Positions 19,179-58,000 of a stretch of 64,000 nucleotides of DNA are shown here, piece after piece. A program made the position numbers and the translations under genes. The stretch is from Thalia democratica (lineage: Eukaryota). Below the pieces are notes generated by a model, which saw nothing but the letters and a program-made list of their open reading frames with translations, was not told the DNA's origin and did no database searches. Numbering within the stretch: position 1 is the first letter of the stretch; each line of letters begins with the position of its first letter. The stretch lies in contig OZ241829.1 of NCBI GenBank assembly GCA_965202585.1, forward strand, positions 15,314,001 to 15,378,000, written 5' to 3'.

Positions 19179-22100
19179 TCAGAGACATATTTCCTTGCAC
19201 TTTTCTTCAACTTCATATCTGCCGAGACACTTATTCAGCCCATCCCGAGGACTTAAAAATAATATCAGCATTTTAAGTAAATAACTATTTATTAAAACAG
19301 TAGCTAAAAATGTTTGTGTTCGAAAAAAATATTGCTAAAGTATACAGAGTTTACTTTTACTGCTATCAACAGCTTTACTTAAAAAGTTTCAAAACATATA
19401 AAATAAGTTAACATTTTTTTGTAGACTAATCAACTTTTACTTTTTCTAACAAAACGGCCTGTTTCTAATTGAATCTGTAATTACTAAAAAAACTGTTTTA
19501 AATATTTCATAATACTAATCAATAACGACGATTAATTTGAAAAAACTTGAGTAAGCATTGCTACCAGCTTTAATGACATTTAAAGTTATTAGTTTTTACC
19601 TGAACATTGAAATACTGAACAATTAAACTGTTTACTTTTCCCTGCAGGCGTGCACGTAAGTCTGGTATGTCAGCACGCATTTGAACTGGCACGGGTAGTC
19701 CCTTGTGACGTCAAAATCGAAATACTCGCTCCACGGGGGCTGTTTAATTTCCTTTTCGGTCGTCTCGTCGGTGCATACGTTGTCGATACAAATCTTCAAA
19801 ACAAATTAGACTAATTTATAAAAGTAAGTACTATAATGTTTAACTTAGTATTAAAATTTTGAACGCGAAATATTCTTTAATATCAAGTTAAATAAGCTCT
19901 TTACAAATTCAGTAAATCGAATAGCCTTTTTTAGTTAAGACAAATAACTATACTAAAATATTCAAAACAAAATAAATATTCAAAAAATAATTCATACGGT
20001 ACTTGAATCGCTTAAAAAGTTGTGATTTTTAATATTAAACTTAATTTATTATCATCATTATTATTTTTGTAATGTAAAAATATATTTTCAAACAACTTAC
20101 GCCGTTTTGGGCGCACTTGGTCCCTTGTAACGGGTCGAACACGTAGTGGTCGTCCGTAATTTCCTTCCGATGACGCCTTCGCAACGCTCGTCGTGACGGT
20201 GTTTTCCGGAAAGAAAAAGGGTACCGGTACAGTTCCACGCCCCTCTTGTAAAATTCAAACTCACTCGACTTTGGAATGCACACCGCTTGCTCGCATGTTA
20301 TTTTCTGTTGTGAGCTTGTAAATTGTGTTTTGTAGAACAAATATTTATTTTTAGTCTAATTGTTGAGTTTAACAAGTAATCAGTTGCTAAAAGTGAAAGC
20401 TTTACAATTTAGTTAATAACATTTGTTAAGGTTCTTTTTTATACCAAAATTTTAGAGGTCTTTTCGTTTGTAGTTTGATTAACAGTATTACTTTTTTTTG
20501 TACAATAAACGTGGTTTTTCAATATAAAACAACATAAAAGTTTTATCAGGCAAGCTAATACGTGCATCGAAAATACAGCTTAAAAGCAGTTGGAATCAGC
20601 TTGAGTCAATAGTTTCATTTCATTAAAAAAAAATACTTGTCACCTTTTTGTAATACACGTAGTCCGGAGACACTAGCTTGCACTGGGCGTCCAGGCTGAT
20701 TCTCGACCCGGGGTACTTGTAGGGCGGAACTGGGGTTAGAAATGCGATCCTGTCTCTCGCCAACAACCGGCCGTTGGTGAAGTACTTGCTGTGGAAAAAT
20801 AACGGCTGTAAGTTATAAGCGATGTGGAAAACGGTTTAAAGTTTTTTATGTGTTGGCAAATAATTTTCATAGTGTAATAACTTTGTCGAAAGTATAAAAA
20901 CTAAAAGTTTTAAGGGCTTGATTAAAATTGAAAGTATTTTTTGTCTGTTGTCAAAAAATCTATAATGTTTAAATAGTTTGGTCAAAAAAATTAAAATTGT
21001 TAGTTGTAAGGGCTGTAATAAATATTAAATCAAAATAATTTTCTTTCAGGTACAAAATTATAATCAGTACTGGTGAAGTATTTCCTATCAAAAAATTATG
21101 AGAAATGAAATATCAAAAATACAAAGTTTTATTTAAATTTGAAATAGCGAACTTAAATAGATGGACTGTTTGCTTTGTTAATTAAAAAAATGTTTAGATT
21201 TCTGTTCATCAGAAAGCATTTTGTTAATTTTTATAAACCACAGTCGCTTATTTTTTGGAATTCACTGGTTTAGTTGATTGTAAGCAAAATTTTTTGTATG
21301 TTGTACAATAAGTGAATATCTAAAATACAAACCATGAAAGCTATTAAAAAGTGTAGAACATTTTTTGATTAATTTATTCAATTCATTATTGTACTTGTCA
21401 CCATAATCATATAAGGTGATAAATTATAATGCTACTAAGCATACTAGCTTCTATTTGTACAAATTTTATTCTTACAGTAGCCTGACATAAACATTCCATG
21501 TCAAAAAAATCTGTTACAACTAGATTTTTTGTTTAATTACCTAGTTATATTCTAAAACATAACTCACAGAAGAAAGTAGTCAAATATGACTCGCTTGCAG
21601 TTTTACCTTAGTACTTTTAAGATGTTACGAAACAGATTAGTTTAATATATCTTATTATTTTATTATCAAGAGCTTATGTTAAAACAAAACTGAACTTACT
21701 AAATAAAATAGTTAAACTTGAATAAAAAACTTGTAAAATAAATCGTTATAAAAGCAAACGAACTGTAAATAAACAAATTACAAATACACTATTTTTTTAT
21801 AAAATTGTAAAAGTAATAAACAAATTATAAAATTTAAAATTTAATAATAAAAACTAAACTCACTGAAGAAAGTAGTCGAACATGAGTCTGTTGCAATCTG
21901 ACCAGCCTGTAATTTACTTTATATGTTAATACAAAAATATATATATATATATATATGCAAGGATTATTCCTTAAGGCACAACAGGTCTCGACAATTTTGG
22001 TTTTGGAGACAAAGTTAATTTTTAAATTTATTTATTTACAAAGGCAACAATGTTTCTCCCCTAAGGGATCTTCAGGCCTGCAAATTTATTTTATTTTATT

Positions 22101-37000: not shown

Positions 37001-40000
37001 GGCGTGCTGGTCTTTGGTGTCCGTGTCCACCGACGGAACCTTCAGCTTCTCGGCTGCCGAGAACAAGTTGGTCGACTCCGTCTTCTGCTTCTCCGCTTCT
37101 TCCTTGATCATCACAGCCTGCTCTTCCAGCTCGCCTTTCAGTTTTCTTGCGACTGGAATCTTGCTTCTGTGGGTGAAAATGTACATGTATTAGTAAAAGA
37201 TATAAAAAAAGATATTCTAGTGCTTTGTTTAATTAAATTTTGCTATATTAATGCACTCTTAAGTATAGTTTATTAAGCGAAATATATTTGGTCCTAGGAC
37301 CTGTGGTACAAAAAAACCTTTTGGTTGTATTACAAAGGCATAGTTATAAACAACTATCTTTAACTATTAGTATCTTGTAAATTTCTATAAGTTTGCAATG
37401 AATAACATTAAAAAACTAAATAAATGTTCAAAGTAATTTTTACGTGTGAATTGATTGCCAGTGTTAAGTATTTAAATTTATAAAAATATGGAATTAATGA
37501 CAATATCTTTAACATGCAAGTAAACTGTTTTAAAGTTTCAATTATCAGTTAAAAGAAAAATATAAGTTGTATAGCAAAAACTTTTTTGTTTACCATTTTA
37601 AAATAGAATGTTATAAAAAAAATTGTAAGATAGTATTGATACTCAGTAAAACTCGTTAAAATATTTATTAAGAAATTAAAATGAATTGAAAACTTTTAAA
37701 AGAGAACAAAATTGCACCGTATGAATAAAGTTTCAATACACCTACAGAGGAACACATAAAGAATATTAATAAAAAAAAAGAGTAATATGGAACAACGCCA
37801 TCTAGCAGAGAGTTTGTAAGTCGGACGCAATCATGAAGTTCATGATGACGTTATAAAGACAAAAGTTCGGACCGCCCCCCACCAACAAAGTTGTGGCCCG
37901 CATAACAGAGGTTCGTCCGCGTCACGTGCTACCATAGCAACAAGAAAACGGGGCCCTGACAACGTACCTGTGGTCGAACCACGTTGAAATGTTTTGGGGA
38001 ATTTTGTACGGATAGTGGGGGTAGTGACACGCTTCGCTTGCGTTGTACGGCAGGATAGACCCGTTGCTATAACAACAGCTAAATAGTATCCGAACTCTTT
38101 TAAACTTGTTAAAACTTTAAGTCAAAATTTAAGAACAAAAAATTGAAAAATACCGATTGAAATTGAAAAAAAAGCTTATCTGCTATGGCTGTTTGTCTTA
38201 TTAATATGTAAAACTTAGTTTTAAAAATCATCTGCAGCTCTTAAACCATTACTTATTGTGGTTAAAATTATACAAAAAAAATTACATTACTAGCTTTTGC
38301 CTAATAAAAACAGCAAGCTTTTATAAAATAAACAAACTATAAACTGGAAATTAAAGCAAACACAATTTTTTTTTTTGCAAAACTAACTCGGCATCTTCAG
38401 ACTCGCTCAGCTTCAGCAGCAGGTTGTTCAGGACGTCCAACGCCTCCTCGATCGAGTCCTTCGCCTTCTGGGAGTTGTCGAGGGCCTGCTGCGCCGTCTG
38501 GCTGGCCAGCTCCGACTCGTTGACGACCCTGACGGCCAGCTCTTCCGCCAACTCCGCCAGCTCCGTCATGTTCTCGTGCTTGTGCTTCTGCTGGTCGGCG
38601 ATCTCCTTCGCCACGCCCAGGTCGAACCTGGCCTGCTCCAGCTTCTTGTTGGCCCGCTCCAGGGCGCTGCTGATCTCAGCGGCGGCGTTCGCGTTCTGCA
38701 CCGTCTTGTCGTCGGCGTCGGCCACCTTCTCCGCGCACTCCTCCACGTCCTTCTCGATCAGCGACAGCTTCTTGAACACCTTGTGCAGCTCGTCCGACAC
38801 CCGGTCGATCGAGTCGCGCAGCTCGGCCTGCCTCTCTGTGTGACGTCACAACAATAAAGTTTTTGCGTGGAAGTTTTCGACACGCTCTGGTGGGTGCGTG
38901 AGTTAGAATTAGAAAAAAATGTTGCGTTTCGTTGTAAAGTCTGCGATTTAGTTGGCACAGAATGAAAAAGTAATATAAGCTCGTTTAGAATGGAATGAAA
39001 GGAATTTTGAAAGGCTGAAGTATTTTAATTGTACGTCTTCGTTAAAATAAAGGGTTACGTTACAGTTTTTGCGTAGGAATACTTAAAAAAAGTATTTGTG
39101 CAAACAAGCATTACTTGGGTGATATAAAAAGAACTAGTTTTAAAAACGTACCACTGGATTAATTAATTTCTAAAATTTTACTTAACTATTAAGTTAGTAA
39201 TAAACTTCAATACTTCTAAAATCAAAAATTAAATTATAAAATTTCTATAAAAAGTTAAAAAAAATTGAAACATGTGCTTAGACAAAAATGTTTGAGGGTA
39301 ATTCAAAGTTTGTTGTTATATTCTTTCAAAATGACAATTAAGTTTATATTAACTGCTGTTATGTTATTTAGAAATGACAATTAAATCTCACCAGAGTTCT
39401 CGTTGGCGCTCAGCAGCAGATCGGCGACGGTGGAGTTGAGAGCTCGGAGCTGATCCTCGAACTCCTTGTTGGACCCGTCCTCGCCGACGGCCACCGTCTG
39501 GTTGCCCACGTCGCTGACTATCTGCTCCAGCTTGGCCAGGGCGGTCCTGTGCTCGTCCACGGAGTTCTGGACCAGTCCGTAGCACGCCGGGCACTCTGCG
39601 ATTAATGTGGTTTGATAAATAATGATTGTGTCATTTTGTCAACTTGTGTATTTTAGAGTGTTTTTCAGGTTAAGTATTTATTGCTAAAATTCTGTGAAAA
39701 AAAATAGTTATACTAGCTTTTTTTTTATGTTATCTGAAACTTTAAATTTTCGTTGTGTTTGTTTTATTGTTTTAAAAGTGTCTTAAAAACTTGTATATTG
39801 AGAGCACATATGAAAAGATTTTGTTTGATATTTGAAGTATATAAATCTGTCAGTAAATTTATACACCATAATAAATATTTACACTATTAAACCAAGTTCC
39901 AAACGCTGCATTAAATGCCTTCAATAACGAATGATCTAATTTATTAATGAAAAATACTTCATAAAATTAATTTAGATTAAGTAACAAGTTTCCGCTTGAG

Positions 40001-43000
40001 TATTTACTGACAAAGTCGTATAAATCCCTTTCACTTATGCTCAGTTTATTGCTTTTTGTTCGAAACCACGACCTTTTCGTGAATTTCCCAATGGACCTCA
40101 GTCACGCAATTGTGAGCGCGATATTAGTTTTTACTTTTTACCACTTCCTTAAGTTTGTTTACACATTTTTAATAAACACTAAGTGACGTAGCAATTATAA
40201 TCAGTATTGTTATTAAGTATTAAATAGTTGTCAGTTATTTTTATTATAATATGTTTTACTTATAAAAGTATCTGATGAATAAATGATATTAGATATCTTG
40301 CAGTGTTATTTTGATAGAAAAATAAGGCTGCAAGAATCTTTTAAAGTTTATCTTAGTTGTTTAATTTTGCTTTAAATAACTTCTAGCCAGGGGTTTAAGC
40401 TTTTATACTATATTATAACTATAAATTTAATTTAACTGAAACATTTATATTATTAAGCAGTAATTCCAAATTTGACGTGACACTTTGTACAATAGGAATA
40501 TTTTTTTTGTCCAGGAATATCATGTCATAAAAAGGTCAGCCAAACTCGTTTTTTATCCTTAATCTAATTCCAATTTACACCTATTGAAAGTTTTTGTACA
40601 AAGAAAGTATCTTATCTGAAAAAAAAACTGTAAATACTTCATTATACTAGTATTATTTTCAGCTTTCTTTATATCCATTGTAATCTTTTTTATTCTCTGT
40701 GTATTAAAAGATTGGCAAATTGTTCCTGTAACCTTTTGGAATTTCTACATGATTAGCAATTGAAAAATTAAAAGATCTTTTTTGTAATACATAATTGGAA
40801 ACAGCTTTTAGACTTTAGTTTGATACTAAAGTATTTGTAATGTTTTGTTACATTTATTGAAAAAAAAGTATATTTAAAAGTAATGCGTTTATCGGATATA
40901 ACTTATAAGGAAAAAAAACAGTTTGTTTTATGTTTTCGTTTATTCTTAAAAAATATATACTAATAAATATAAAAGTTGATATAAAGCACTGCTTTTTGCT
41001 TCAATTTTTTAAACATTCTTAATAGCTAAACTTTTCTTCATACTGATGAATTTTTGTTTTCTGATTTTTTTTATTAATTCAACTTACCAACGCATCCAGC
41101 CTTGATGTTGTGGTAGTTTTCTTGGCACATGTCGCACTTTAGTCCGAGGACGCCTTCCTTGCACATGCACTTGCCGTTTTCGCCGCATTGCAGGGACACG
41201 CTGCCGTCAGGATCACAATCACATGCTGCGTTTTTATTATCAAGTTAGAAAATTACAATTAAAACAAATTTTTAATTACATATGCAATAACTAAAGTAAC
41301 GAAATGTATAAATTGAAAAGATGTGTTTTATGCTTTAAAATAGCGACTTAAAATTTTTATGTGAACTTTGGTTTCGAAAACTAAAAGTTATTTCATCACT
41401 AATAAAAAAAAAGATTTTTAAACAAACATTTGCATCCGTTGCCGTCCATTCCGTAGTGGTTGTCAAGGCAACTGTCGCACTTGTCGCCCCCCACACCCGG
41501 CAGGCACGTGCACACCCCCGTGTCCTCGTCACACTTGCCCTCGTCGTCCGACCCCAACGGGTGGCACTGGCACGGCTGGCATCCGTCGCCCGACACCAGG
41601 TTCCAGTACCCGGGCTGGCACTGGTCGCACTTCTGACCTGTGACGTCATAACGCGTTACTTCGAAACGGTCGGCGCTTCCAGCTTTGTTGCGGTCGCCGT
41701 GGGAGCGAAAACAGTCCGGTCGCCTTTGAAGTTGGTGCGCAGCGGAGCGTGAGAAATTTGTTTGTCGTTTTAAGAAATTACTCCGTAAGAGCATTAGATT
41801 TAATTTTATATAATAATAAGTTAAGCACACTGGTATAATTCAATGCCTTTTTTTTTGAAAGCTTTGATGATAGCATTTGTAAAGTTAAAAAATAAGTTGA
41901 CATAAAGTATTAGTAATTCTTATTCTAAGGGAGTAAATAAGTCTCATATATATAAAAGTTGTTTACTCTGTTAAACAGATATATTCATTAAATGTTTTCA
42001 ACAGCTGTCAATTTAAACAAAAAAAAAAGTTATAACGTTAAACTTTTATAAAAAGTTTTAAGTTTTGTAGCTATTGTTGATTGAATTAAAAAAGCTTAAA
42101 AGCTAATTTGTAGAGATTTAGGTATTAAGTTTATTGCCTATTGCATACTGCAAGAAATATATAAAAAAAGCTTCAAATAATAAATAAAAATGCTTAGCTA
42201 ACAATTCTAATAATAAATTGTTTTATTTCAATGGTAGACATGAAAGCCTTGGCAAGAGACGAACGGAAAGATAAATTAGATTATCTTTAATTGATTAAGT
42301 AAATATGGGTTTGCTAATTTAATCTTTATTAGAATATACTGCTCATGACATAACGCGACACTAAGAAATTCACTAACTAATCCGGATTAAATTCAATATC
42401 ATCAAGTTTAATCAAGTTTTCTATTTATAGTAATGCACAACTAGATTTAAGCGATATTACAGCTTTGATAAAATTGATTTAAAGCTAAATTTATTTAAAG
42501 ATAAAGTTTCTTTCAAAACGTAAACACGTTTAAGCTACTAATATATATGCTAAATTGTATGAAATTTATATAGAGTATACAAAAGTGATTTGCCACTTAA
42601 TAAAAATTTTTTCAACTAAATAAATTGAATTATTTTTTCCTTTTTTCAACTAACCAATGACGAAAGGCTTGCAGTCGCAGTTTCCTGTCATTGGTTCGCA
42701 CAAGTCGGTTTCACGGCTTCCGATGGCATCACATTCGCAAGCTGTGAGTAAAAAATTAAATTTAATAAAAAAAACTATGAAGAAAGAAGATACATTTAAC
42801 AATTAACCGTTCCACCGATTACAACTGACAAACAGCAATCAATACTGCGCAAAGTTGCTTTCTAATTCTCTTTAATTCTGTTGACTGCAAACTGAACTTC
42901 AAAATAAGCTTTATGAAATCAGCTTAACCTTCAGGCTGTCAGCAAACTCTTTAATCAGCCAATCAACAGCAAACAAAAAACATTTAATGAGCTTTCAAGG

Positions 43001-46000
43001 TCACGGAACGACGTAATCCCGTAAATATCACCTGCAACAACGCGTGTTTACGAGCCGAAGAGCATTAAAAAGGTCGCATAGAAGCTGTATGGGATGATCC
43101 AAGTTGTGACTCATTTTCTCTTCTAATCTCAATCGGCGACTTCCTACGAGAGGACAGACGTAAACATTGTGTGAATGAAAACTTTGCGAGCTTCTTACTC
43201 ACAATCTCACGAGATTGTTCGTCGCTGCTGAGTCGCGCCTTTTGGACTTTCCATGGCAGTTGTCTCTTTTCTTCTCCAAGCCGGCCGTTAGTCCCATTCG
43301 AGCACTCGAGTTTGTTTTAGTTTCGCCGGCCGATTTTGTTGTTACAGCGGAAAATATGGAATTTTATTATACTTGATAAGAGCAACTTGAAGCCATAAGT
43401 GCTTTGTTTAAGCCGTCTTTGTAGCTTTTAAAGCCATAAGTAAACTTAAAGCGATCATATAGTTTTTTATATATTATCTTTCTTGACTAATTTTATTTAA
43501 GGCTGAAATTTTAAATTAAGTTAAGCACAAACTAATACTACATTTACACTTTAATATAAGGGGAATATTTCATCAAAAAACTAATTCAACTTTTATCTAA
43601 ACTTATTTAACTATTTAATTTTTAAGTAACTCACGCTGGCACCTCTCGTCTGGGTTATTGGTGACGGGTTTTCCCCAGTATCCCTCCAAGCAGCTGTCGC
43701 AGTGGAAGCCCGTGGTGTTGTGGACGCACTTGAGGCACTCCCCGGTGGTCGTGTTGCAGTTCATCACGTTGTTGTCGTCCACATTTCCGTTGCACATGCA
43801 CCTCTGGCACGGACCCCTGCCCCTCGGCTCCCCGAACCATCCGTCCTGGCAAATCTCGCACTGGCGTCCTGAGAAATGAGTAGATTAAGAATTATTTTAT
43901 AATCTACAGTACATTTACATAGTTTTGCTACATTAAAACTTTATGTATAAATTTTTACAGTTTTTCCCCCAAAATCTAACCATTTGTAGTTTGAACTCAT
44001 ATTCATACTATGTTTCTAAAGTTTTCAAGTACTTTGGTGAATCATATAGTATAAAAATTTTGACATTTTGTTATTTTGTCTTTGTTTACTTATATATATA
44101 TCAAAACTAAAGAAATGTACAAAAATCTCTTTAAACGTTATTCTCATTTATGTAAACTTGTTTTTAATCAAACAATAAATTGATTTTGTAGCTTTACTTA
44201 GTTATCTTGTATGTATAAAAACAAGTATTTTAGTTTTTTCGTTGATTTCAACAATAAAAATATTTGTTAAATATTGCAAATGTTTGACAACTAAGTATGA
44301 TCTAACACTAATTAGGTCATTCATGTTTAAGCTAACGTGTCAATGATTAGCACCACAGTAATCTCCAACTAATTATACTAGCTAATTTTACATATTCTTA
44401 ACCTACAGTTCGTTCAAAGCCTGTATTAACTAATTACCTTAATAAAACGTTTAAATTTGTTTTTTTTAACGCTTATGGTGTTTGAAAACTCCAGTGACAA
44501 CCGATGCTAATTAAGTTATTAATTTATTAAAACACAAGACCAAAGCCAATTCAAAGCTTGCATTAACTTGTATTAACACTTCATAACTGTTCAAACATTT
44601 TTGGCCATTAAAAGTGCCGGCACACCAGATACTTTCGCTGAATTCAAAAAGTAATTACAAAAGCTCGTCTTGTTTTACTCTGGCGGCTTGTATTGTCCGG
44701 CAGGGCGTGCTCTCCGTTTTAAATTAGCAGTCGCTTTCTCACTGAGAGGTGTCGTGTTTTACACCAAAGTTAAATTGGCAATTACGCCCGCTTCTGTTGC
44801 GTAAACACAAAAGTGTCATAAACTTTCATTGCTACAATTATTGGTTCTGATCGTTATCTGGATGTTCAATAAAAGCTTAATTTAGTTAATAAAGAAAATT
44901 AACCAAAAGTTTAAATGCTTAAGTAAGTCTTCTTATATGAACAACATCAGTTGGTTTAAAATAATAGTTGTTGTAACAAATTTTTACTTAACTATCACTT
45001 AATTTATTAAAAACATGTTTTTTGAACATAACAATTTTTTCAAAATATCAAGTTGTTTTTATTCTTCTTTAACTCCTTATACACAGACTGCAACGTGAAA
45101 AAAAAATAGCTAAATAAAAAAAAGAAGCCGAACGAATCATTTACTTTTCGCACTTTGAGTCGTCGCAATGAAATCACTCAAACGCGTCTTAACCTGTCAT
45201 CGTTGCCAGCCAGTTTCCATGACAACGCAAATGTGAGGCGCCAACCCTGCCAGGTATTATTGCGTCACACTGGTGAGAATTGCGCTTTTCTCACGTCTGT
45301 GAGTTCGAATTATTATTTATTAATTTTTCACCATGCTCTCATGTGGGTCACAACAATAACTCTGGAGCTGTTTATTTTGCAATGTAAACAATTGTGTCTG
45401 GAGAGATTTTCCTTCCACTTGTGTTCACCTGGCACTTATAGTTTTGTTTTATGAAGAGCCTTTGTTGTTCTAGTCTAATCTGTGCTTCGGTGAAGATTAA
45501 GGCAAATTGAAGAACAGCTTTTGTTTTTCTCAGTAAAGATTTTTAAAATTTGCTACCGTTTTCTTTTTCTTCTGGTTTACAAAAGCAAACTCGTGAAGAT
45601 ATTTGTTTTAGATAAATTAAAATAACAAAGTAGTATATACTTTTCCTGCATCGACAAAGTATAGAAAGCCTAGCTAATAGTACATCAAGACTTGTAGCAA
45701 CAACTTTAACTATTTTTTAAACAGTAATTAAAATAAATCATCATCCGGTTTTTGCACTTCAATCGTGTGTATTCAACCCTTAGACGTTTGAGGAAACGTT
45801 TTGAAAACTTTTTTATATTTTGAAAACAGACGTCTGCCACAACCTACCTCCATGCGCAAACAATAGACAAAAGAAAGTGAAAAAAAGAGAATTTGTTTAT
45901 TTAAAGTTCAAATTCTTGTTTGCCTGTGGAAACCGACGTATTTTACGACTGGCAAGGTTTAAATGGTTGATATTTGTTTGCAATTATATGTGTGGTAAAA

Positions 46001-49000
46001 TAGAGAAAAGTTTTTTTTGTAATGTTCAAAATTTAATTAAAATCTTTGATATTTACAACTAGTACTTAGTAAATAGCTATGTGAATAAATGTTCATGAAA
46101 GGAATAAAATCTAATAAAGTTCAGAGAAAAAAGAACAACTAATTCATAACTGTTTTTTTTCTTTGACCTTTTTTAGTTTTTACGAGCAGCATATAACAAA
46201 AATGTTATTTATTTTTATCTATGAAACATATTTTTGTGCCAGAAAAATGGTTGTAAAAAATACTTCAGTAAACATTTTATTTTAAGCTACACCTTATAAA
46301 CTTTTTCTAAGAAAGTTAATATACTCTTTTTTTTAATTGGCTACTTATATATATATATATAAGTATATGTTTAGTTTGGTAATTATTTTTCAGTTACAAG
46401 AAAAAAAAAAGGAAAAACTAGCATATTATACTCGACTGTAGCTGCAAATTCAACAGAAAAACAGTATGTAAAATTTAGCTTTCAGCGGTATAATTCAATA
46501 TTTTCAAGGCTTGGTAAGCACATAGCGTTCGGTTACTTTTGACAAGGATGTGCTTGCGGGAAAATATTCAAAGTATGCAGCAGCATCTATGCCCACGCAT
46601 AAGCCTTTGTCTTGTAATAATGTCTGCTTTGAATTTATTTCATGTGAACTTAAATTAAACAAATTAACCTTAACTATCACTTTAAAACAAGTTGCGAAAG
46701 GATTATTTTCTTTTTTTAGAAGCAAAAATTTTTAAAATACACGAGTCACCTAAAGTTTAATTTAATCAAGTTTTCTTATATAATGATTTTAAGTTTTTTA
46801 TTTTTATTTTAAACCTTTTGTAAACTTCGTACTTACAGTGAAAATTAGAAGATTTTTTCACCGCAACAAAGAGAACTTTCAAATTGAAAATTCAAGCTAC
46901 AGTGGTATTGAATGTGGAAGAGGCGAACGATTTGCATAAATCACTTTTATTAGGTTTGATTTTGTAAGAATGGGAAAAGTTACGACCGCACAAAGACAAC
47001 GAGGCTTAATCTGAATTGTGCAGAAACACAAAGGGGAAGGCAGTCGGGTGTGACTGCAAACGAAAACTTTCTTACCTTAGTTATTTAGTTCGCCTATACC
47101 GTAATACTAATAAGTGACTGAGAAATTAAATGATGATAAAGTTGTTTTTAAATTCAGTTATTTTTTTAACCAAAGTAAACTTTAACTTTTATTCTTACCA
47201 AAAATTTACTTTAAAGCTTAAACTTAAAAGTTTAAGTTTTGATATTAAAAAACTAGCACTTAAAAACCGAATATAAAAAGATAAACTTATCATTCATTAC
47301 TAAATAAAACAAACGACTTTAAATAAATGCTCTAAACATTTTACACTGACCAGCATATCCTTCCGGACAGTTGACACAAACGACCTCGTCCGAGCCCTCT
47401 ATCATCGCGCACCCCGACTTTTCTGGGCACGGGCACGGCTGGCACTGCTGGGGGGTTCCCCTTCTCTTCTCGTCCCCGTTGAAGTAGAACCCCTCGGCGC
47501 ACATGTCGCAGTGGTCGCCCACCGTGTTGTGCATGCACTCACACACTCCTGTGTGAAAAAAATATTGTTATTTTTAACACAAGGTAGTTTTATACCAGGG
47601 TGAAAAATTTTAAAATTGATTTTAAACAAATAATTCTTAGTACTTGAGAAGAAAGTAGTTGATTTTTCTATATTTGTTTAAATTCTTTATTTAGTTCTTA
47701 TCTTAATAATTTTCAATTCTAAGTCGTAAATTTTTGTTTGTTTATTTAAGCTATTTTTCGTTAACAATAAAGGGTGAATCAGTACCAGCATTTGAAAAAA
47801 ACTAATTCATCTAAAGTGTGACGAACCAGTGACGGGGTCGCACATGTCCCCGTGGCCGTTGCAACTGCACGGGACGCACTTATCGAACAAGCTGCCGTTG
47901 GGCGGGTCCCTCGTGAACCCCTCCTGGCACGAGTTCATCGAACCCTTGTACCCGTTAGCTTCGCAAACCTCGACCCAATCGGCAACCTCGCCTTCGTCGC
48001 CTTCGACCGCCGTCTCCAACCTGACGTTGTCCAAGTGAACCCGTGCTGAAATATTATTTTATTTACCAAAAGAATAATGTGCTGCAATTCTTAATTTAAA
48101 ATGTAACTTCTGTTTTACTTTTAGGTAAAGGTCTAACTTTAAGTAAAGCTGAGAAGTACGTATTATGACTGAAAAATATCAAAACAGTCCTCTAATGATT
48201 AAAAATGACTTAAAATAAATTTAATAACCATACAGTAAACCAAGATAACACAAACTAATTCAAGAGGAAATCTGAACTTATCTCAACCATAAACGTCTTT
48301 ATCACGATGGTAATAAATTAGGCTTACAAAGTGCAAGCATGTAAAACGATATACTTTTGAAAATTCCCACGGTCGGCAGTACAAACTGTGGCGCATGCTA
48401 ATTAGGCTGAACGCACTCGAGATTTCACTTGACATGACGTGCCTTCACACTACATTACACAATGAACCGGCTGGATTGTTAAATAAACACTGCACCGGTG
48501 TGTATTAAACGTCAAAGAGGTCAACAGTTTGTTTGTGTTTTGATTGTTGTAAGTCAAAACGCATATGTGTTGAGTACTTATTTGGTTTTGGAAGTATTAA
48601 CAGTCCAAAAATAACAACAAATGTGTTTTCTTTTAGTTTTTTAAGAACATTTCAAAGCTAAATACACTTTGCAAGATTATGTGCGTTAACGTGTTAATAT
48701 GATTATACTGTTACTATACATCTTATTATGTGACACTAAATGGTGATTAATTAGTTGAAAAACTCATACTAATTCTACACACTTACTTCCTTGCGCGTAG
48801 CTGGACCTTATCTTGAGGGCGGTGAGCTGGAACAGCATCTTCTGGAACTCGAACGCGGATATCTGGGGCGTGAACTCGTTGGCTTCGTGCAGCATGAACC
48901 TGAACGTCTGCCACCTGTAGTTCGGCTCGGGATTTCCCTACATTGAAATTTCAGTTTTGAAATAAATAATGCTAAACTTCGTCTATACTGGTCTTACTTA

Positions 49001-52000
49001 TTTTTAAATGATTAACTAGTTTTGAACGAACTTTTAAAAGTTTGTTAAAGTAAAGCTTTAATCGAAATATTTTGAAATAGTCCGGTAAAATACTTTAAGT
49101 TTTTTCAGCTTAAAAATGATAATTAGGATAGAAAGATTGTATGTATGATAAAACAAAGCTTATAAATTTATAAAAAACTTAGATTGAGATCTTTCTTCGA
49201 AGATTTTATAATGATATAAATTATTTTATTAAAAATCTAAACAAGCAGTCCTATAAACTTGAGTTGCGCTTACCTGAGCGTTGATGGTGATGCCGACGGT
49301 GTGGTCCTTGCTCTGCAGCACGACGTCCTGCCTGCTGAGGCGGGGCCTCGGTCTCGAGTAGTCCTCCCCGCTCGATCCGGACGCCACCGAGGGTTCGTCC
49401 TCTCGCATCTTCAGGTCGAAGCTGAGCACCTGACCGTAGCTCTTCTGCTGGTCTCCCAAAAACTTTTCTGCAAGTTTTCATTAGTCAAAAATTAGTCAGG
49501 TAAAAGGTTATAAAAGGTTTGATAACTGTTTAAAAGTTCAAACTAAAAGTTGTACAATAAAAGGACAAGTTGAAACAGATATATTAGTAATAGTACTTTT
49601 TTATTTTCTGTAATAAATATAATATAATGCAAAAGGTCGAATTACTGTCTAAAAATTTCCTTTGAAACTGACTAATGCATTTATCTTATTTGATCAGCTT
49701 GTGTTACTATAAAAAGGTTAATGGCAATTACTAACGAGATGTTTACAGTGTAACAGTTTAAAACACTTGAGAAGAAAATAACTGCTACTTAACTCATCTC
49801 TTAACGAGAGGTAGCAACTCTAATTGCTCGAAAAAATGCATCGATAATTTAAACGCGCTTAATTATGAGATTTGTAAATTAACCTGCGCTACTTAATCTC
49901 TTAAAATGCTAACGATAATGAGTTGCAACATTTATAGTTTAAAAATTTGAAGTAAAACTAAAAAGAAACAAAGAAAAACTGAAACCGGCAGCTGAGTCAA
50001 CTAAATGAGCTCAAAAGTTCTGCGTTGAAAGGCATTTTGTAAATTAAACAAAATATTTCAGTCTCCCAGACTAATACGTCTGATAACGAGGCATAAATCA
50101 TAAAAAAGCATCTTTCTTTGGCCAGCTGAAAACCAGGTAATTAGCTAAATGGTCGATAAATCACTCAACTAAATTGACTGCGGACTTAATAAACTTTTGT
50201 AAATCGCCACTAAGATCAAAGGGCACCGATGACCTACTTACTTGTAGCGTTCGCTTGTTACAATTTTTAGTTTTGGTTATGATTGATTAATCTACGTACA
50301 TAAAGCTTAAAATGGTCTAAGATTCTTTGAAGGTTTCCTCAAAAGTTTATACCTCTTTTTCTTTTTTGAAAAAAAGTTATGTTAGATGACCTATGTTACT
50401 ACATTTATTAAAAAGCATGCTTTCAAGTCAAACTCTATCATTTCTGAAAGCATGATGATAAAACTTTAACATAAAAATTTATCAGACATGAAAAAGCTCA
50501 ATATGATTAAGTTGTTTAATCATATGTAAAATTAAAATGATTTTTAAAGTAATGATAAAAAAAGCTATGTATATAAACATATTTTGTATAAATTTATATG
50601 GATATATATATATATACTTATAATTTTTATACCTGGAGCGACGAAATACGTCATCAAGTATCTGTCGGGAGACATGCTGACGTCACCCCTCTTGTACTCC
50701 ATGTCCATGTCGTCATCACCGTACGCACTTCCGCTCCATCCGTCCCGGTCTGTGTGACGTCATAATAGGTTATCATATGAGAAATCAAATAATAGTTTAT
50801 TTTTATTCGATAAGTTTTAAAAGATGCGTGATGTTGATAGTTTCGCAATCTAAACAGTGAAGACAACTTAAAGTAGCGCAAAAATCGTTTAGATTAAATT
50901 GAAAACAAAAAAAAAGTTTTCGAAAATGAAAAATAAAACGCATTAGACTTTTTTTTATTAAAACATAAACACGCGACCTTAAACAAAATGTTTAATTTAT
51001 CTATTTTACTGCCGATTCAAAGATTTAATCAATAAACAAGGCGGGCAGCATTTTAGGTGCAAAGTTACAGCCATTTCCCTTTAACAACACAATCATTTTG
51101 TCTCGTATAAACACAATAATTTTTCTTCAGATAAGCATTGTTTCAAATGAAGCTTGAAACTTTGTAGAGATTTCGTTGCTGATAAACGCGTTGATGGTCG
51201 TGGCGATTACGTAGAAATTCACGCTCGAATGGTTTTGAGTTTCGATATTTAAAATCGTCGGTAGACTCGGGTGAAATTGGCGTGAAAAAAAGTGTCAAAA
51301 TATTTAGTGAGGGCAATCACACGGTATTAGGCATAAATGCTACTTGGCTTAGGACGCCGTGATAATTAAAAATTGTGAGAACTCTACCTTGAATTTATTT
51401 TCGTTGCTCATTTTGAGAATAATAAAGTTTTGTAGAAATTAGAAGCTTTGTTTAATTAGTTTGTTTTTTAAACTTCTAGTTATTAACTATTTTTTTTAAT
51501 TTAAACTAAACTAAATGCTTTTCTTATATACCACTAACTATAAATTTGTAACATGAGTCACAGTTTTATAGCTAAATATTTATTTTCGGTCATAAACATT
51601 GTTAGCAGAACTAATTAAAATTCTTAAGATTCGCGTAGTCAGCCAGCGTAAATAATTTTTGTTTATATTTGTCCCACTGTCAAGTTAATATGAATTTAAG
51701 CTGTTAAAATTAAAAGTCTGAAAGTCTTAAAATATTTCAAGGTCAGTACAACAGAAACCGAATTAGATGAAACTAATCCACTGAAAACTAAAAACAAAAA
51801 TCTTATAACACATTGAAATGCGCAAATTTTTTATAAAGTTTTAATTTTTTTTTTGACTATATCCACCCTAAAAAACCAATCGTCAAGGTAATAGATTTAG
51901 TACTAGAGAAAATTTAAATATTTTAAAATTATTAGTTCAAACCTGTGAAGAAGTCGCTGGAAATGGTGGATTTCACGTAACCGTCTGTAACCTCGCAGAC

Positions 52001-55000
52001 GTTGGAGTGTCCGAAGCAGAAGCAGGAGATGCACCCGTAAGGGTTGCTCCCCCTCAGTTCCATGCTGCCCAGCTTGCATCTGTTTGGAAGTACTGTTGTT
52101 TACAAAACGATTTAGTAGTCAGAGTGTTTACCTTAGATATATATCCCATGATTTTGTTATTACTTTGCAAAAGAAGCCTGTATTATTATTATTATTTTTA
52201 TTTTCTAAAATATAGTTTATTTGAAATAAAGTTTATATCTAAAATAAAAATAAGAAGTTATCATTTTCAAACACTACTATGAACAAAATCAAACCTGTCG
52301 CACTGGAGACCTTCCACGTTCAACTTGCATTCGCATTGTCCGGTTTCAATGTTGCACGTGGTGCCGTTGACTGTTCCGTCTTCGAAGCAAGTGCATTTTC
52401 TGCGAAAGACAACAAAATTTCAAGATCAACTGCATTAAAAACTAAGGCGCTGTCAACTACATTTGCAGATAACCTTCAAGAGTAGCCGAATTAACGTTAT
52501 CCCCATAGCTTTATTAAATTTGCACAAACAACTTGAGCGCCTTTTTGAAACGAAAACAACTTAACAGTAAACAAAGCTTCAATGATCGGCTTTGATAAGA
52601 CGACAGCGAAACTCGTTACAAAGCTTCTGCTGATCCCTAAATTTGTTGTTGCCCGCTAAAGCAGCTTATTGTCTGACAAACAACGTGTTAATAAAACATA
52701 AAAATGCAAATAACTTAAATTCGCTTGATAAATTAATGCGTTTTTGCTTTACTTTTTTTAATAAATAATCAACTTTGTAATTGTTTTTGCTGTCCTATAC
52801 TTATTCGTCTACTGAAATTTATTTTACTTTTAAGAATTAATAAAATGCCTTGTATAAAATTAAACGCTGTAACATTGCATAAGCACTGCTCAAAAAACGA
52901 GCTCTATCCGAGAGCTCACTCTTATCATGTGTTTATGCACACAACAAACGATAATCGCAATACACTTCAAACGCGGCAGTAGCATTTAAGGATGGTCACT
53001 TCCTTCCTTATTATGACGTGTTTATTGTTATACCGTGACGTAACAACTCACGTGCATCCAGCCTCGTTCAGGCCGTAGTAGCCTTCCAAGCACTGGTCGC
53101 AGTTCTTTCCCCCGACTCCCGGCTTGCACATGCACTGTCCCTGGTCGTCGCACTCTTGACTCTTTGAACCTGAAGTGAATACAAGATTAGTGTGTGCGAA
53201 TTCATAATAAAACAAAATGTTTGCCATTGTAAAAAGAACGCAGTTTGTCTTGTGCAAGTATGATAGATTAGGTATGTGTCAAAGGACAGTGTCTGCTATT
53301 TTGACTTTATTTTGTTTATACATAAAACTTTTTTTATTTCATAAAACTGTCTGTAATATTTGTATCACTTCGGTGTTTGTGTGCAAATATATTAGGCAGT
53401 TTGTTACTTTTTGCTTTTATTGTTTGTGTTTCTGTTTTTAGTTTGAAACTATTTTGACAGCTTAAGTAAATTTTGAACTTTCAGTTAACTCTAGTATTTG
53501 TGTTTAAATGCTGTACGCGGCTTCACTCTTTTATTATATGAAAAGATTAAAACTTGATGGATAAAGTTAATCAAAAATTAAAAAAAACCACTGTATGCAA
53601 ACTAGTTATACATTCCCATTTAATTAAAACAAAAATTAAAGTTGTTGTGTCGTCATTATTGGTTTTATCATTTTGTAACAGTTTATTCAAGGTTAAAGTT
53701 CACTTTTGTATAGTTGCAAATAAAAAAAAAAAACTAAAGTTTAAGGTCAGTGTAAAAGTATATAATATTTTACAGTACAAGATGACACTTTTATATCACA
53801 CATAAATGCCAGCAGAGATAGCAATAAAAAGATAACGGATAGTGGTGGGAGTAACCAACCGATCTGGTCGCAGTTGCACGCCGTGCAGTAGTTGTCCTGG
53901 TCCCTGTAGTGGTACGGAAGGCACTGCTGGCAGTTGGGTCCGTCCGTGTTGTCGGCGCACTCCAGGCACCTGCCTCCCCTCCCGGTCGCCACGAACAGGT
54001 CGTGGTCGTACTCGCATTTGTCCGACTTTCCGTTGCACTCGCATTCTGAAAAAATAAAAATAAACATTTAAACTTAAAAAAATTATGTAGTTAAGCATTA
54101 TTTTACTTTGTTTTCTGTTTCAGGATAAATAAGTTTAAAATTTAAGAAACAATTTTTATTGAAGTTATTGTAAATAATGAATATATAGATGTTTTATTTT
54201 ATTAACTTATATTTAAAGCCCATGTTTTGGCAAAACATTATTGTAAAAAACATCAGGACTTAAGTATTTTGTAAAAAGTGGTTAAAATAACTTTAAAGCT
54301 AAAGTTTCAAACGATTACAAAATTTTCTTCTGAAACATAAGTTCATCGTTAGCAGCTATGTGTTACAAATTTGAAGTATTTATTTTCCAAGAAGTATGTG
54401 AAAATACATTTACAATAGGTAATTCTCTAATGTCTACAGCTGTGGCAAAGAACATCAAAGAAACTTTTATTATGTTTGAATATTTTTACAAGTATGTTCG
54501 AACATGGTCTGATCAAACGTTTAACATAAGAACTGATAAAACCTACATTGAAAAATGTTGAAGAAACAAAAAGAACTAGTTTCAATGCATTGTTACATAA
54601 TTACACAATTGTCACAGGAAAATAATCTAGTAAAATTGTGTACTGTAATTTACACACAATCTCGAGTAATTTCACAACAGAACATCCCTTTATTGCGTCA
54701 CAAGGGCAATTACAAGCAACAAACGTTTCTTGCCCCGCATCACACCAAAACTGCCTGCCCTCATTGCGAGAAAATCGCCCGAGCTGCGTCGCAATTTCGC
54801 GACTATTTACACAATAAACACGCGAAATTGCTGGCAATTATGCCCGAGATAAACAAGAGATCTTCATGTGCGTTTCATGTTTGGTTTCGACCGCAATCTC
54901 CAGCATCAAGCAATTCCCGCTAAATCGTTTATTGAGCGCATGTGTGTAGCGACACTGCTTTGTTTTCTTCTTAGCACACATATGCTGTGTGTGCCATCCC

Positions 55001-58000
55001 CACTGAAATGCCGTCTAGACTTTTGTGTTCTTTCTTCTAATTGGCTCACGTTAATACGGTAATTGTTGCTTGCAGGGGCTGCTCTTCAATGTACTGATGA
55101 TTGATTGTTTTAAACAGAATAAATGTGTATCTTTTTGCTGCTTTGGGTGGCAAGGAAGAAGGCAGATAAGTTGGTTGTATCAGCCAGTTTTCAAAAAGTA
55201 ATTTTGTTCTTAATATTTTGAGTTTGGTAACTTTAAATAAAAAATAGTCGGCTGTTTTTAAACAATAAAAGCTTCAGGTATATGTTTTACATGTTATAAA
55301 TTTAAAATAAGTTGATTGAAAAACAAACTGAAATATTTTAACATAAGTTTGTATTTACTAGTTCTTTAAGAAGGTTGATATTTGAAAACAATTCAAAAAT
55401 AATTTGCTGTGGTTTGATTTATTAACTTGTCTCCTAAATCAATTACCAACAATTTTACTGATGTTAAGTAGTAAATAAAGCAAAGTTTTAGATAAAAATT
55501 AATCTGTCTACCACAGGATAACGAAAAATAACTTTACTTGATAGAAATGTCTAGCTCTCTTGTGTTTATTCAATAGCATTAACTTGCAAAGTTTTCTTAA
55601 ATACCATTCGCTGTAACCTTAAACAACAGCAAATGTTAAAGAAGTTACAAAGCTAACAGTTAAATAACAATTGAGTAAAATCAGCTACACTCGTGTTATT
55701 TAAATAAAAAAGTATTGAAGTTACCACTTCAAATACAATTTTTTTTATAAAGACACCTTTGATTGTTACTTTATTCTTCTTTTTTTTTGTCACACTTTTT
55801 TCTTAAAGCTAAATATTCTGTTATTGTTTAGAACCCCAAGATAATGAACACGGTCAAATTTCTTCAAAACTGTCCTAACACGCTGTGCATATAACACACT
55901 CACTTATTTCAGCACAAAACCACTTCATCACCCACCTCACTTCTTTGTTCAAGCAATTCGGATTACGGTTTTTCGTATTACTTCATTTATTTTCGTGCGG
56001 CTTTCCCGGAAGCCGTGTTTCCGGTTTTGCGTCCGCAACGAAAAATGTCTCCATCTCTCACATAGAAAAACCTCGCTCGCTGATTAGGTTTAATTGTCAA
56101 ATCATCGCAAGTTTTGTGTGTTTGCCGGCGAATGGCGACGCCAGTCACAGCCAATTTCTCATCGAATTTTATTAGTCAGACGAACACAGATTATTATCGG
56201 GAATAAAAAACTTTGTTTGTCGGTGTTTGCTTTAGAAGAACGACGTTTTTTGATGTTTAATTGAGTTAAATCGTGTCAAGTCTTCTGAATTGTAATTAGA
56301 CGGTTCTTAAAGCCTTTATAGGAAAAATGTACAATGCGTTGATTGAATAAATACAATGTTGATTTTTCAGCTTATTTTTTATTTTTTCAATCATTTTCTA
56401 AACGTCGCAGATAAAGTTTTACGGTCGAATTAAGTCTGAAAAAATTTTTATCTCAAAAAAATATTCTGATTATTAATCAAGGTATCTCAAAGATGATATC
56501 TTCGTTCAAATAGCCCGAAACGCACCGCCACCCCTCACAAACAATTGTGACGTCATTCGTCAAGGCAACGGTTCTTCATTGCTTCCGCTCCATCGTGTTT
56601 GTGACGTCACAAGGCTTGAAATAAAAAAAACCTTCAGTGGAAGTTTTTTGTTAAACTTTTGGCCGCAATAACTTTAGTTAAAAATTGTTCAGTGATTTAA
56701 AAGTTGGTTTTGAACTGATTTATGATTTAAAACAATATGTATAGTTTTAAGAAAATATTTTTTTAGTGGTCTAACTGATGTCTGTTGCTGAAAGTAAGAT
56801 TTACAACTTTTACTATGATAAACAGCTGTTTTGTATATGACGATCAATTCAATTTACATATATGTTTGCTTTTAATCATAGAAAAGTATTATAATTATTT
56901 GAGAAAAAAAAGTATAATCTATAGTCAGTACATTAAACAAATAGGGCATCTATCTTAATATCTATAGTCATTTTTTACGATGTTTGTTGCAGAAGTTTAT
57001 TGCCTTTCAACAAAAATACAAATTACCTTTATTGAAAAGAATATAACAAGATTAAAATTGACAAATTGCTTTACGTAAGCATTTGGAAATTGACCCAAGC
57101 TTCAACTTCAAAAACGCGTATAAGGTCATTTAGCCATTAAAAGTGTTTGAAGCGAAAAAGCAGCGAAAATACAGCAACATTAAATGTGAGCGCTTGGCGT
57201 TTATTTTTGCGACGCTCAAGTGTTTCCCGGTGATCAAATTGGAAACATTTTACTTGAAAAACAAGTAAAAAATTTCAACGAGAAACAAAACAATTTTTAG
57301 ACGTCTGAACTAGAGGCTGGAAGTTTAAGGTAGAAAAGTAGACGGGATTGAAATTAGGCATGTAAACGGTCTTGTGACCTGTCTAGCAATAACTACAAAC
57401 GCGCCCTTACATGCATACGAGCACTGAAGGTTTGTTTACAGCAAGCTTAAATATATTTTGTAATTTAAACGACATCTGCAGCTCAAATAAAGTTATAAAT
57501 AAGTTTTTTGCGACAAACGTCTGCAAAGTGAGCTCTCGCAAACTTTAGGCTTGACTTTGAGTATGCAGTTGACTTTAACTGAAATTATAAATTATAAAAC
57601 TGTTCTGTATGTAAGACTTTTATACATAGGCTTGAGTTAACATAATTAAACGAAGCTTTTAATGTAAATACATAAAGTTTTAGCCTTACTACGTTTTAGT
57701 TTATTAAGCTCAACCAATTTTACTGGTTTGTAAAACAAATATCCACTAATACAACGTTATCTAAACATTAGTGCTTGGTAAGTACAAGATCTCTGCTAAC
57801 ACTTTGCTTTTAAAGTTAAAAAAAAATAAAGACTACATTTTAATCTTAGTACCAAACAACAGATTATCGCTAATACACATTTTTCATTGTCTAAACAGCA
57901 CAAAAAATCCAAGATAAATTTTTCACTGCTATACAAACAACACTTATAAAGCGAATATAATACTCAAGTCTTGAAAAAATTGTACATTTTTTCTAAGAAC

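Follow-up and report, generated by a model that had tools for sequence, protein, structure and literature searches.

The eight-letter palindrome TGACGTCA, identical to the core of the cAMP response element (CRE), looks like an unexplained mark of exon borders in the salp Thalia democratica and not like the sign of a special kind of splice acceptor. The window analyzed here is a stretch of 64,000 nt (contig OZ241829.1, positions 15,314,001 to 15,378,000) in which the palindrome, called the word below, stands just upstream of three acceptors of a laminin-gamma-like gene. The position of the word at exon borders, its use, its enrichment and its conservation were observed in the window, in a sample of the genome and in related salps. 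As a tentative explanation we favor a dimeric protein of the basic leucine zipper (bZIP) type that would read the word on DNA and so mark exon borders.

Three word-bearing acceptors in a laminin-gamma-like gene

Copies of TGACGTCA in the window were counted against dinucleotide-preserving shuffles, and eight exact copies were found where 0.32 were expected. The host gene of the three acceptors is laminin-gamma-like and lies on the minus strand; its best reference (P0033, 1,609 aa) aligns colinearly from about 62,070 down to about 34,800. Read on that strand, GC-rich open frames are preceded by TGACGTCA followed by cacag (38841), cag (41641) and cacag (50755), which puts the word 5, 3 and 5 nt upstream of the exon. 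At the three sites it covers roughly positions -13 to -4, with the AG on one side and, on the other, a plausible UAAC-like branch region at -17 to -22.

The use of the acceptors was determined with public contigs aligned to positions 38000-43950, namely same-organism transcript-type contigs (X4) and two metatranscriptomes (X7 and X8). The segments skipped in the RNA contigs were 38836-39391, 39596-41087, 41226-41427, 41638-42654 and 42742-43634, all of them GT..AG. Since these contigs join 38835 to 39392 and 41637 to 42655, two of the three acceptors are proven to be in use. The third is predicted from an open frame, a homologue gap of matching size and order (36 residues) and a frame-consistent exon chain.

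The claim of the sequence-only reading that the word stands 3-5 nt before three acceptors of this gene was therefore borne out at every site, with RNA support at two. Its chance estimate took no account of how frequent the word is in this genome (about 1 per 14 kb); at the real frequency, about 24 acceptors and a few offsets (some 72 positions) would yield about 0.005 hits against the three seen, and the placement is still far from chance. As part of our best explanation, the three sites, the third of them predicted, could well be ordinary GT-AG acceptors in which the word takes up the approximately 10 bases that separate the AG from the likely branch region.

In two of the introns the final 85-145 nt (38849-38960 and 41649-41782), non-coding as they are, have a GC content of 0.5-0.6, and in these two cases the GC islands reach beyond the exons; the island at 38849-38960 is well conserved among related salps. 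In the X8 transcript, which comes from a related species, the last bases of the upstream exon are CGTCACAG; these eight bases also close the window intron (41638-41645), while the window's own upstream exon ends in TGTCATTG. This match may be a coincidence or may be linked to the copying of a junction.

Splice signals around the word

The word had been described as a replacement for the polypyrimidine tract. It does fill the slot between branch region and AG, but the contrast was overstated, because this slot is not normally U-rich here: 42 predicted acceptors of the genome contained 56% pyrimidine at -20..-5 compared to 50% in deep intron sequence. At these acceptors the longest pyrimidine run had a median of 4, an A-rich peak was present at -17..-21, and RNA-proven neighbouring acceptors read ...ataaaaacgcag and ...cattaatcgcag. 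A distinct class of tract-less acceptors was not supported, the other acceptors of the genome being weak in pyrimidines as well. U12-type introns were also rejected, as the donors GTGAGA, GTTAGT and GTTTGA do not match /RTATCCTT and no TCCTTAAC branch site was found. Donors often carried T at +3 (GTTAGT, GTTTGT) rather than the usual purine, for example at 42654, 41427 and 38387 and in loci L029-L033.

Placement of the word at exon borders

The placement of the word outside the window was determined in twenty 10-kb stretches that surround the first 48 copies of contig 1, which is of chromosome scale. All CpG-containing 8-mers of the same composition served as the comparison set and junctions were taken from predicted exons, over 264 kb including the window. 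Seven of the 48 contig-1 copies lay on the intron side within 30 nt of a predicted junction (five donors, two acceptors), as against 27 of 978 matched words (odds ratio 6.0, p = 6e-4). With the window included, the counts were 9/56 and 40/1,412 (p = 6e-5). Exon interiors contained 1 of the 48 contig-1 copies and 66 of the 978 matched words. On predicted exons and within these 264 kb, the word is therefore junction-proximal at both types of junction, above matched words, and it is conserved as described below. The variants TTACGTCA and TGACGTAA were found at junctions in 4 of 29 cases compared to 1 of 46 for other neighbours, the junction windows making up 1.1% of the sequence; on the sense strand the two were used 3 times and once, respectively, a sample too small to weigh. 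A model-free GC-step test gave an enrichment of only about twofold.

When the sampled borders were read by hand, the majority proved to be donors on the coding strand (Table 1), and adjoining frames were confirmed as exons by Pfam (TSP1, Sushi and claudin-like). Many sampled copies stood exactly at a boundary between AT-rich and GC-rich DNA, and short arrays of the word with 25-35 nt spacing were frequent. These data contradict the proposal of an acceptor-specific class, since in the unselected sample donors are followed by the word at least as often as acceptors are preceded by it, and it also occurs within exons. Of the positional enrichment that the proposal had predicted, the enrichment at junctions was found in the contig-1 sample; the restriction to acceptors was not, and genome-wide extensions of the word showed little splice-site pull.

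Two tandem arrays were seen. At L033:2005-2135 (minus), directly after the claudin-like exon, a donor region and the word are repeated four times in 34-nt units (GTAGTG, TGACGTCA or TGATGTCA, TAAT...), and L032:480-700 contains a similar array with units of about 60 nt. In L018-L022 (G000 C1:4.714-4.724 Mb) a GC-rich exon is repeated in five copies 1.5-3.5 kb apart; it contains the word three times in frame, at a spacing of 28-32 nt, encoding NDVI, CDVT and SVTS. Neither the window nor the L018-L022 repeats showed any known RNA family.

Conservation and age of the word

The acceptor word at 38841 is kept in three Tara Oceans contigs of related salps (97% and 91% protein identity). Between the word and the AG these contigs have 3, 5 or 7 nt, and just upstream there is an indel of 6 nt. 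Compared to the 91% relative, the eight letters are unchanged whereas 12 of 22 neighbouring columns differ. At the L030:6436 acceptor the last 58 intron nt, which include two exact words, are identical to those of a relative at 57 of 58 positions, against 74% for the distal intron and 95% for the exon. These comparisons indicate that the word is kept by purifying selection in related salps, and such conservation argues against pure neutrality.

A more distant relative (L044, a Tara contig with 69% identical laminin exons) shares the position and phase of the intron that ends at the 41637 acceptor. Its acceptor reads ...aaaaaag before the exon, without the word, and no copy of the word was found in its 4.9-kb contig, whose exons are AT-rich. 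Because this relative carries the intron but no word there, the 41637 intron is older than the word, and GC-rich exons and the word may have arrived jointly in the lineage of the window. No orthologues of the 50749 exon were found in the metagenome scan. The expectation of conservation at orthologous introns thus held among related salps, where the word persists amid changed flanks, and failed at the 41637 intron of the distant relative.

Abundance and variants in the genome

Word counts were made over the 802-Mb assembly. TGACGTCA occurs 56,755 times, compared to 9,487 copies of the reversed word ACTGCAGT and 3,067 copies of AGTCGACT, a palindrome of the same composition with a central CpG, than which it is about 18-fold commoner. 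One-mismatch neighbours pooled amounted to 174,827 for TGACGTCA and 214,176 for the reversed word, and in the window 11 were found where 12 were expected. Since the pooled neighbours are no commoner than those of the control, the excess forms a sharp peak on the exact word. The sole clearly raised neighbour was TGACGTAA/TTACGTCA, the classic CRE variant, with 51,616 copies against 33,178 for the reversed control of TGACGTAA.

The flanks of the 56 copies from the contig-1 sample and the window were symmetrical and gave a longer palindrome, T-R-TGACGTCA-Y-A, and TGACGTCAC made up 27% of the flanks in whole-genome extensions. The half-sites TGAC and TTAC appear interchangeable, the exact core being enriched and TGACGTAA/TTACGTCA being both raised and located at junctions. 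Copies at borders had nothing in common beyond 12 nt. About 40% of the sampled copies lay away from predicted exons, in non-coding, AT-rich or repeat contexts, some of them within dispersed repeat families.

Further copies in the window

The TTACGTCA variant that had been reported just inside a donor is present, 8 nt into the intron (Table 1). Intronic copies listed earlier at 56548, 56602 and 60451 were likewise recovered, but the exonic copies at 50678 and 19706 had been overlooked. The copy at 19706 was considered as a fourth acceptor and ruled out, since the open frame continues through it and places it in an exon interior. A one-mismatch copy at 50708 lies between the 50678 copy and the acceptor copy at 50755.

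The 13-mer GATGGAGCGGAAG has three occurrences in the whole genome; two are in the window (50728-50762 and 56480-56640), 5.8 kb apart on the same strand, each a few bases after TGACGTCAC. Because the shared 13-mer is so rare, the intronic GC island at 565xx looks like a partial duplicate of the 50749 exon junction. An internal promoter at 56548/56602 was rejected on the same ground, the 13-mer being a rare duplicate and not a common motif. Upstream of the first LE exon, within a weak GC island, there is a further copy of the word at 60451-60458 (tgTGACGTCAta).

Table 1. Copies of the word, the introns they border and the borders read by hand. Plain numbers are window positions; L numbers denote loci outside it.
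Feature	Position	Strand	Description
TGACGTCA copy	38841..38848	palindrome	5 nt (cacag) upstream of acceptor, exon 38388-38835 (minus); RNA-supported junction
GT..AG intron, donor GTGAGA	38836..39391	-	ends at first word-bearing acceptor; joint in X4 and X8
TGACGTCA copy	41641..41648	palindrome	3 nt (cag) upstream of acceptor, exon 41428-41637 (minus); RNA-supported junction
GT..AG intron, donor GTTAGT	41638..42654	-	ends at second word-bearing acceptor; RNA contigs
TGACGTCA copy	50755..50762	palindrome	5 nt (cacag) upstream of predicted acceptor, exon 50633-50749 (minus)
Predicted intron, donor GTTTGA	50750..51942	-	ends at third word-bearing acceptor; frame-consistent exon chain
TTACGTCA variant	53036..53043	-	at +9 of intron after exon 53052-53159 (GTGAGTTG then TTACGTCA)
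TGACGTCA copy	50678..50685	palindrome	within exon 50633-50749, encodes G-D-V-S; 70 nt downstream of acceptor copy
TGACGTCA copy	19706..19713	palindrome	within exon of neighbouring ADAMTS-like gene, encodes F-D-V-T
Two TGACGTCA copies 54 nt apart	56548..56609	-	GC island within 4-kb intron; one followed by same 13-mer as 50755 copy
Donor border	L029 (two cases)		exon, GTTTG(TG), word, then TAAT
Donor border	L031, L032, L033		GTTAG(T)(T)(G), then word
Donor border	L030:4491		GTATTA, then word
Donor border	L028		GTGACGTCA; donor GT within extended palindrome
Acceptor cases	L030:6445, 7820, 2715; L033:2272, 2885		exact word or CRE-type variants

A proposed exon-border mark read on DNA

In the explanation that we tentatively favor, the salp lineage would place the palindromic word at exon borders generally, at donors and acceptors alike, up to about 12 nt into the intron, and also within exons where the protein sequence allows. 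A dimeric ATF/CREB bZIP-type protein would read it on double-stranded DNA and flag the borders during transcription, through polymerase pausing or chromatin marking, in a setting of introns of about 25% GC with weak splice signals. This takes up the second proposal of the sequence-only reading, in which DNA-bound bZIP factors would assist exon definition. We infer such a reader and its effect from the form of the word: a reverse-complement palindrome with symmetrical flanks is meaningful only when double-stranded, and single copies stand without an RNA partner. The variant hierarchy of the word fits the ATF/CREB bZIP family, and 11 matches to bZIP_1 domains are encoded in the genome.

Several points weigh against this explanation. 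It is from symmetry alone that a bZIP-type reader is suggested, and placement within 12 nt of junctions is what would be expected of an RNA splicing element. Genome-wide, the extensions TGACGTCACAG (2,329 copies), TGACGTCACACAG (202, two of them in the laminin gene) and GTNWGTGACGTCA (1,330) show little or no pull toward AG or GT, and therefore most copies lie elsewhere, in AT-rich non-coding DNA and repeat families. Among 20 fetched TGACGTCACAG sites, none or one was acceptor-like and the rest were AT-rich DNA, repeats or multi-copy exons. The home-made exon predictor shifts some borders and sometimes takes the wrong strand, although the key borders were checked by hand and with Pfam. The 200-kb sample represents six regions with few genes, some perhaps belonging to one gene, and several borders fall in one 80-kb region. 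As the regions were selected for containing the word, the junction share within them (about 12-15%) is biased upward.

Alternative explanations

The main rival, which we consider rather unlikely, is a single-stranded RNA splicing enhancer. A protein would bind UGACGUCA or UUACGUCA in the pre-mRNA beside weak splice sites and act in a TIA-1-like manner, bringing in U1 at donors and, at acceptors, U2, a task otherwise done by U2AF bound to a pyrimidine tract. This would explain the position of the word, with conserved copies no more than about 12 nt from the junction at either end of the intron, beside weak donors (GTTAGT, GTTTGT) and acceptors with little pyrimidine excess, and its occupation of the slot from branch region to AG. 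It would not explain the palindrome, as an exact reverse complement with symmetrical flanks has no meaning for a single-strand reader, nor the roughly 40% of sampled copies off predicted exons. We know of no RNA-binding protein motif that matches the word, which also counts against an enhancer. The two ways of reading are separable, since a reader on DNA should leave the non-palindromic variants equally distributed over the two strands at junctions, and a reader on RNA should bias them to one strand.

It is unlikely that the word has no role in splicing and is a passenger at junctions, be it as sheltered intragenic CRE enhancers, through a repair or duplication bias or as a selfish palindrome, with tract-independent acceptors tolerating it. 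The sharp peak on the exact word with neighbours at background would agree with a passenger, as would the word-carrying tandem arrays (34-nt units four times after the L033 donor, units of about 60 nt in L032), the word-bearing junction piece duplicated 5.8 kb away and the copies in dispersed repeat families. On the other hand, no gathering at junctions was seen for matched CpG words, similarity among border copies ends after 12 nt, the word is retained while its flanks are reshuffled, and the 58 nt ahead of the L030:6436 acceptor match the exon in their degree of conservation. Even as a passenger, the word would be a striking case of one exact 8-mer shaping introns and proteins.

The word's first half (UGAC or UUAC, which match yUnAy) might serve as an acceptor branch point unusually near the AG, at 8-14 nt. 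TGAC and TTAC both fit UnAy with the variable letter at the free position, and no pyrimidine tract lies between word and AG. We nevertheless regard a branch point as very unlikely: copies directly following donors, where a branch point would make no sense, are no rarer than those at acceptors, better-placed UAAC-type candidates occur at -17 to -22 of the three acceptors, in line with the A-rich peak of predicted acceptors, and the need for a whole 8-mer would be left unexplained.

Recognition through RNA structure, as the sequence-only reading had suggested in the form of a hairpin, is highly improbable. Copies would pair with each other or with the other intron end, independently of U2AF, like teleost (AC)n/(GU)n ends. 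The word is self-complementary, and a 10-bp stem can form between adjacent copies, only where two lie 25-35 nt apart (z -2.1 to -2.3). However, the three introns carry one copy each, and folds of the last approximately 130 intron nt at the three acceptors were no better than shuffles (z +0.2 to +1.05). For the first and last 30 nt of 13 introns, cognate ends paired no better than ends of different introns (both -5.9 kcal/mol, permutation p = 0.5), and the stem in L028 would hide the donor GU.

Other tunicates are known to have introns derived from transposons, and the same string TG-TGACGTCA-TAAT reads inward from either intron end, but a relic of inverted ends or of the target-site duplication of an intron-creating transposon (introner or miniature inverted-repeat transposable element) is almost certainly the wrong explanation and was rejected, as the word stands at one intron end only, nothing is shared beyond 12 nt and the 41637 intron is ancestral, occurring at the same place and phase in the distant relative without the word.

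Comparison with known systems and significance

Literature searches found no paper describing such an arrangement. The closest likeness is to the CRE, the dimer site of ATF/CREB bZIP proteins: besides the identical core, the symmetrical R...Y flanks match ATF-type sites and the favored variant TTACGTCA/TGACGTAA is a classic functional CRE variant. The salp word differs in lying within 12 nt of splice junctions and in exons, not mainly in promoters, and in its approximately 57,000 copies. DNA-binding proteins that influence splicing through pausing of RNA polymerase II (CTCF at CD45 exon 5, MAZ elements) likewise use an exon-adjacent DNA site that could aid co-transcriptional exon recognition. 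Those are scattered regulatory cases, whereas many constitutive junctions carry the salp palindrome, which overlaps the splice-site region.

Intronic splicing enhancers (G triplets, U-rich TIA-1 sites) and teleost (GU)n/(AC)n introns occupy the same first or last tens of intron bases beside weak signals, and the salp acceptor spacers are CA-rich like the teleost ends. Their elements are not palindromes, and pairing of the teleost class was tested in the salp and not found. Rickettsia palindromic elements and mitochondrial GC clusters are also exact, over-represented palindromes in AT-rich genomes, tolerated in or beside coding sequence; they are mobile units on a 100-bp scale with extended similarity, whereas the salp copies share 8-12 bp and are conserved at orthologous sites.

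The present work contributes the measured placement of the word at both types of junction, its variants, its conservation and a set of negative tests. A doubtful but far-reaching possibility is that the word represents a new layer of exon definition in a chordate lineage, in which a dimer-read palindrome at borders and in exons, with a bZIP-type DNA reader, would partly replace auxiliary signals such as the pyrimidine tract. If true, the favored reading of the word as a border mark on DNA would tie constitutive splicing in a sequence-specific way to a DNA site of the transcription-factor type, at thousands of junctions in one animal genome, and would show how splice-site recognition can be rebuilt as introns drift to about 25% GC and lose their pyrimidine tracts.

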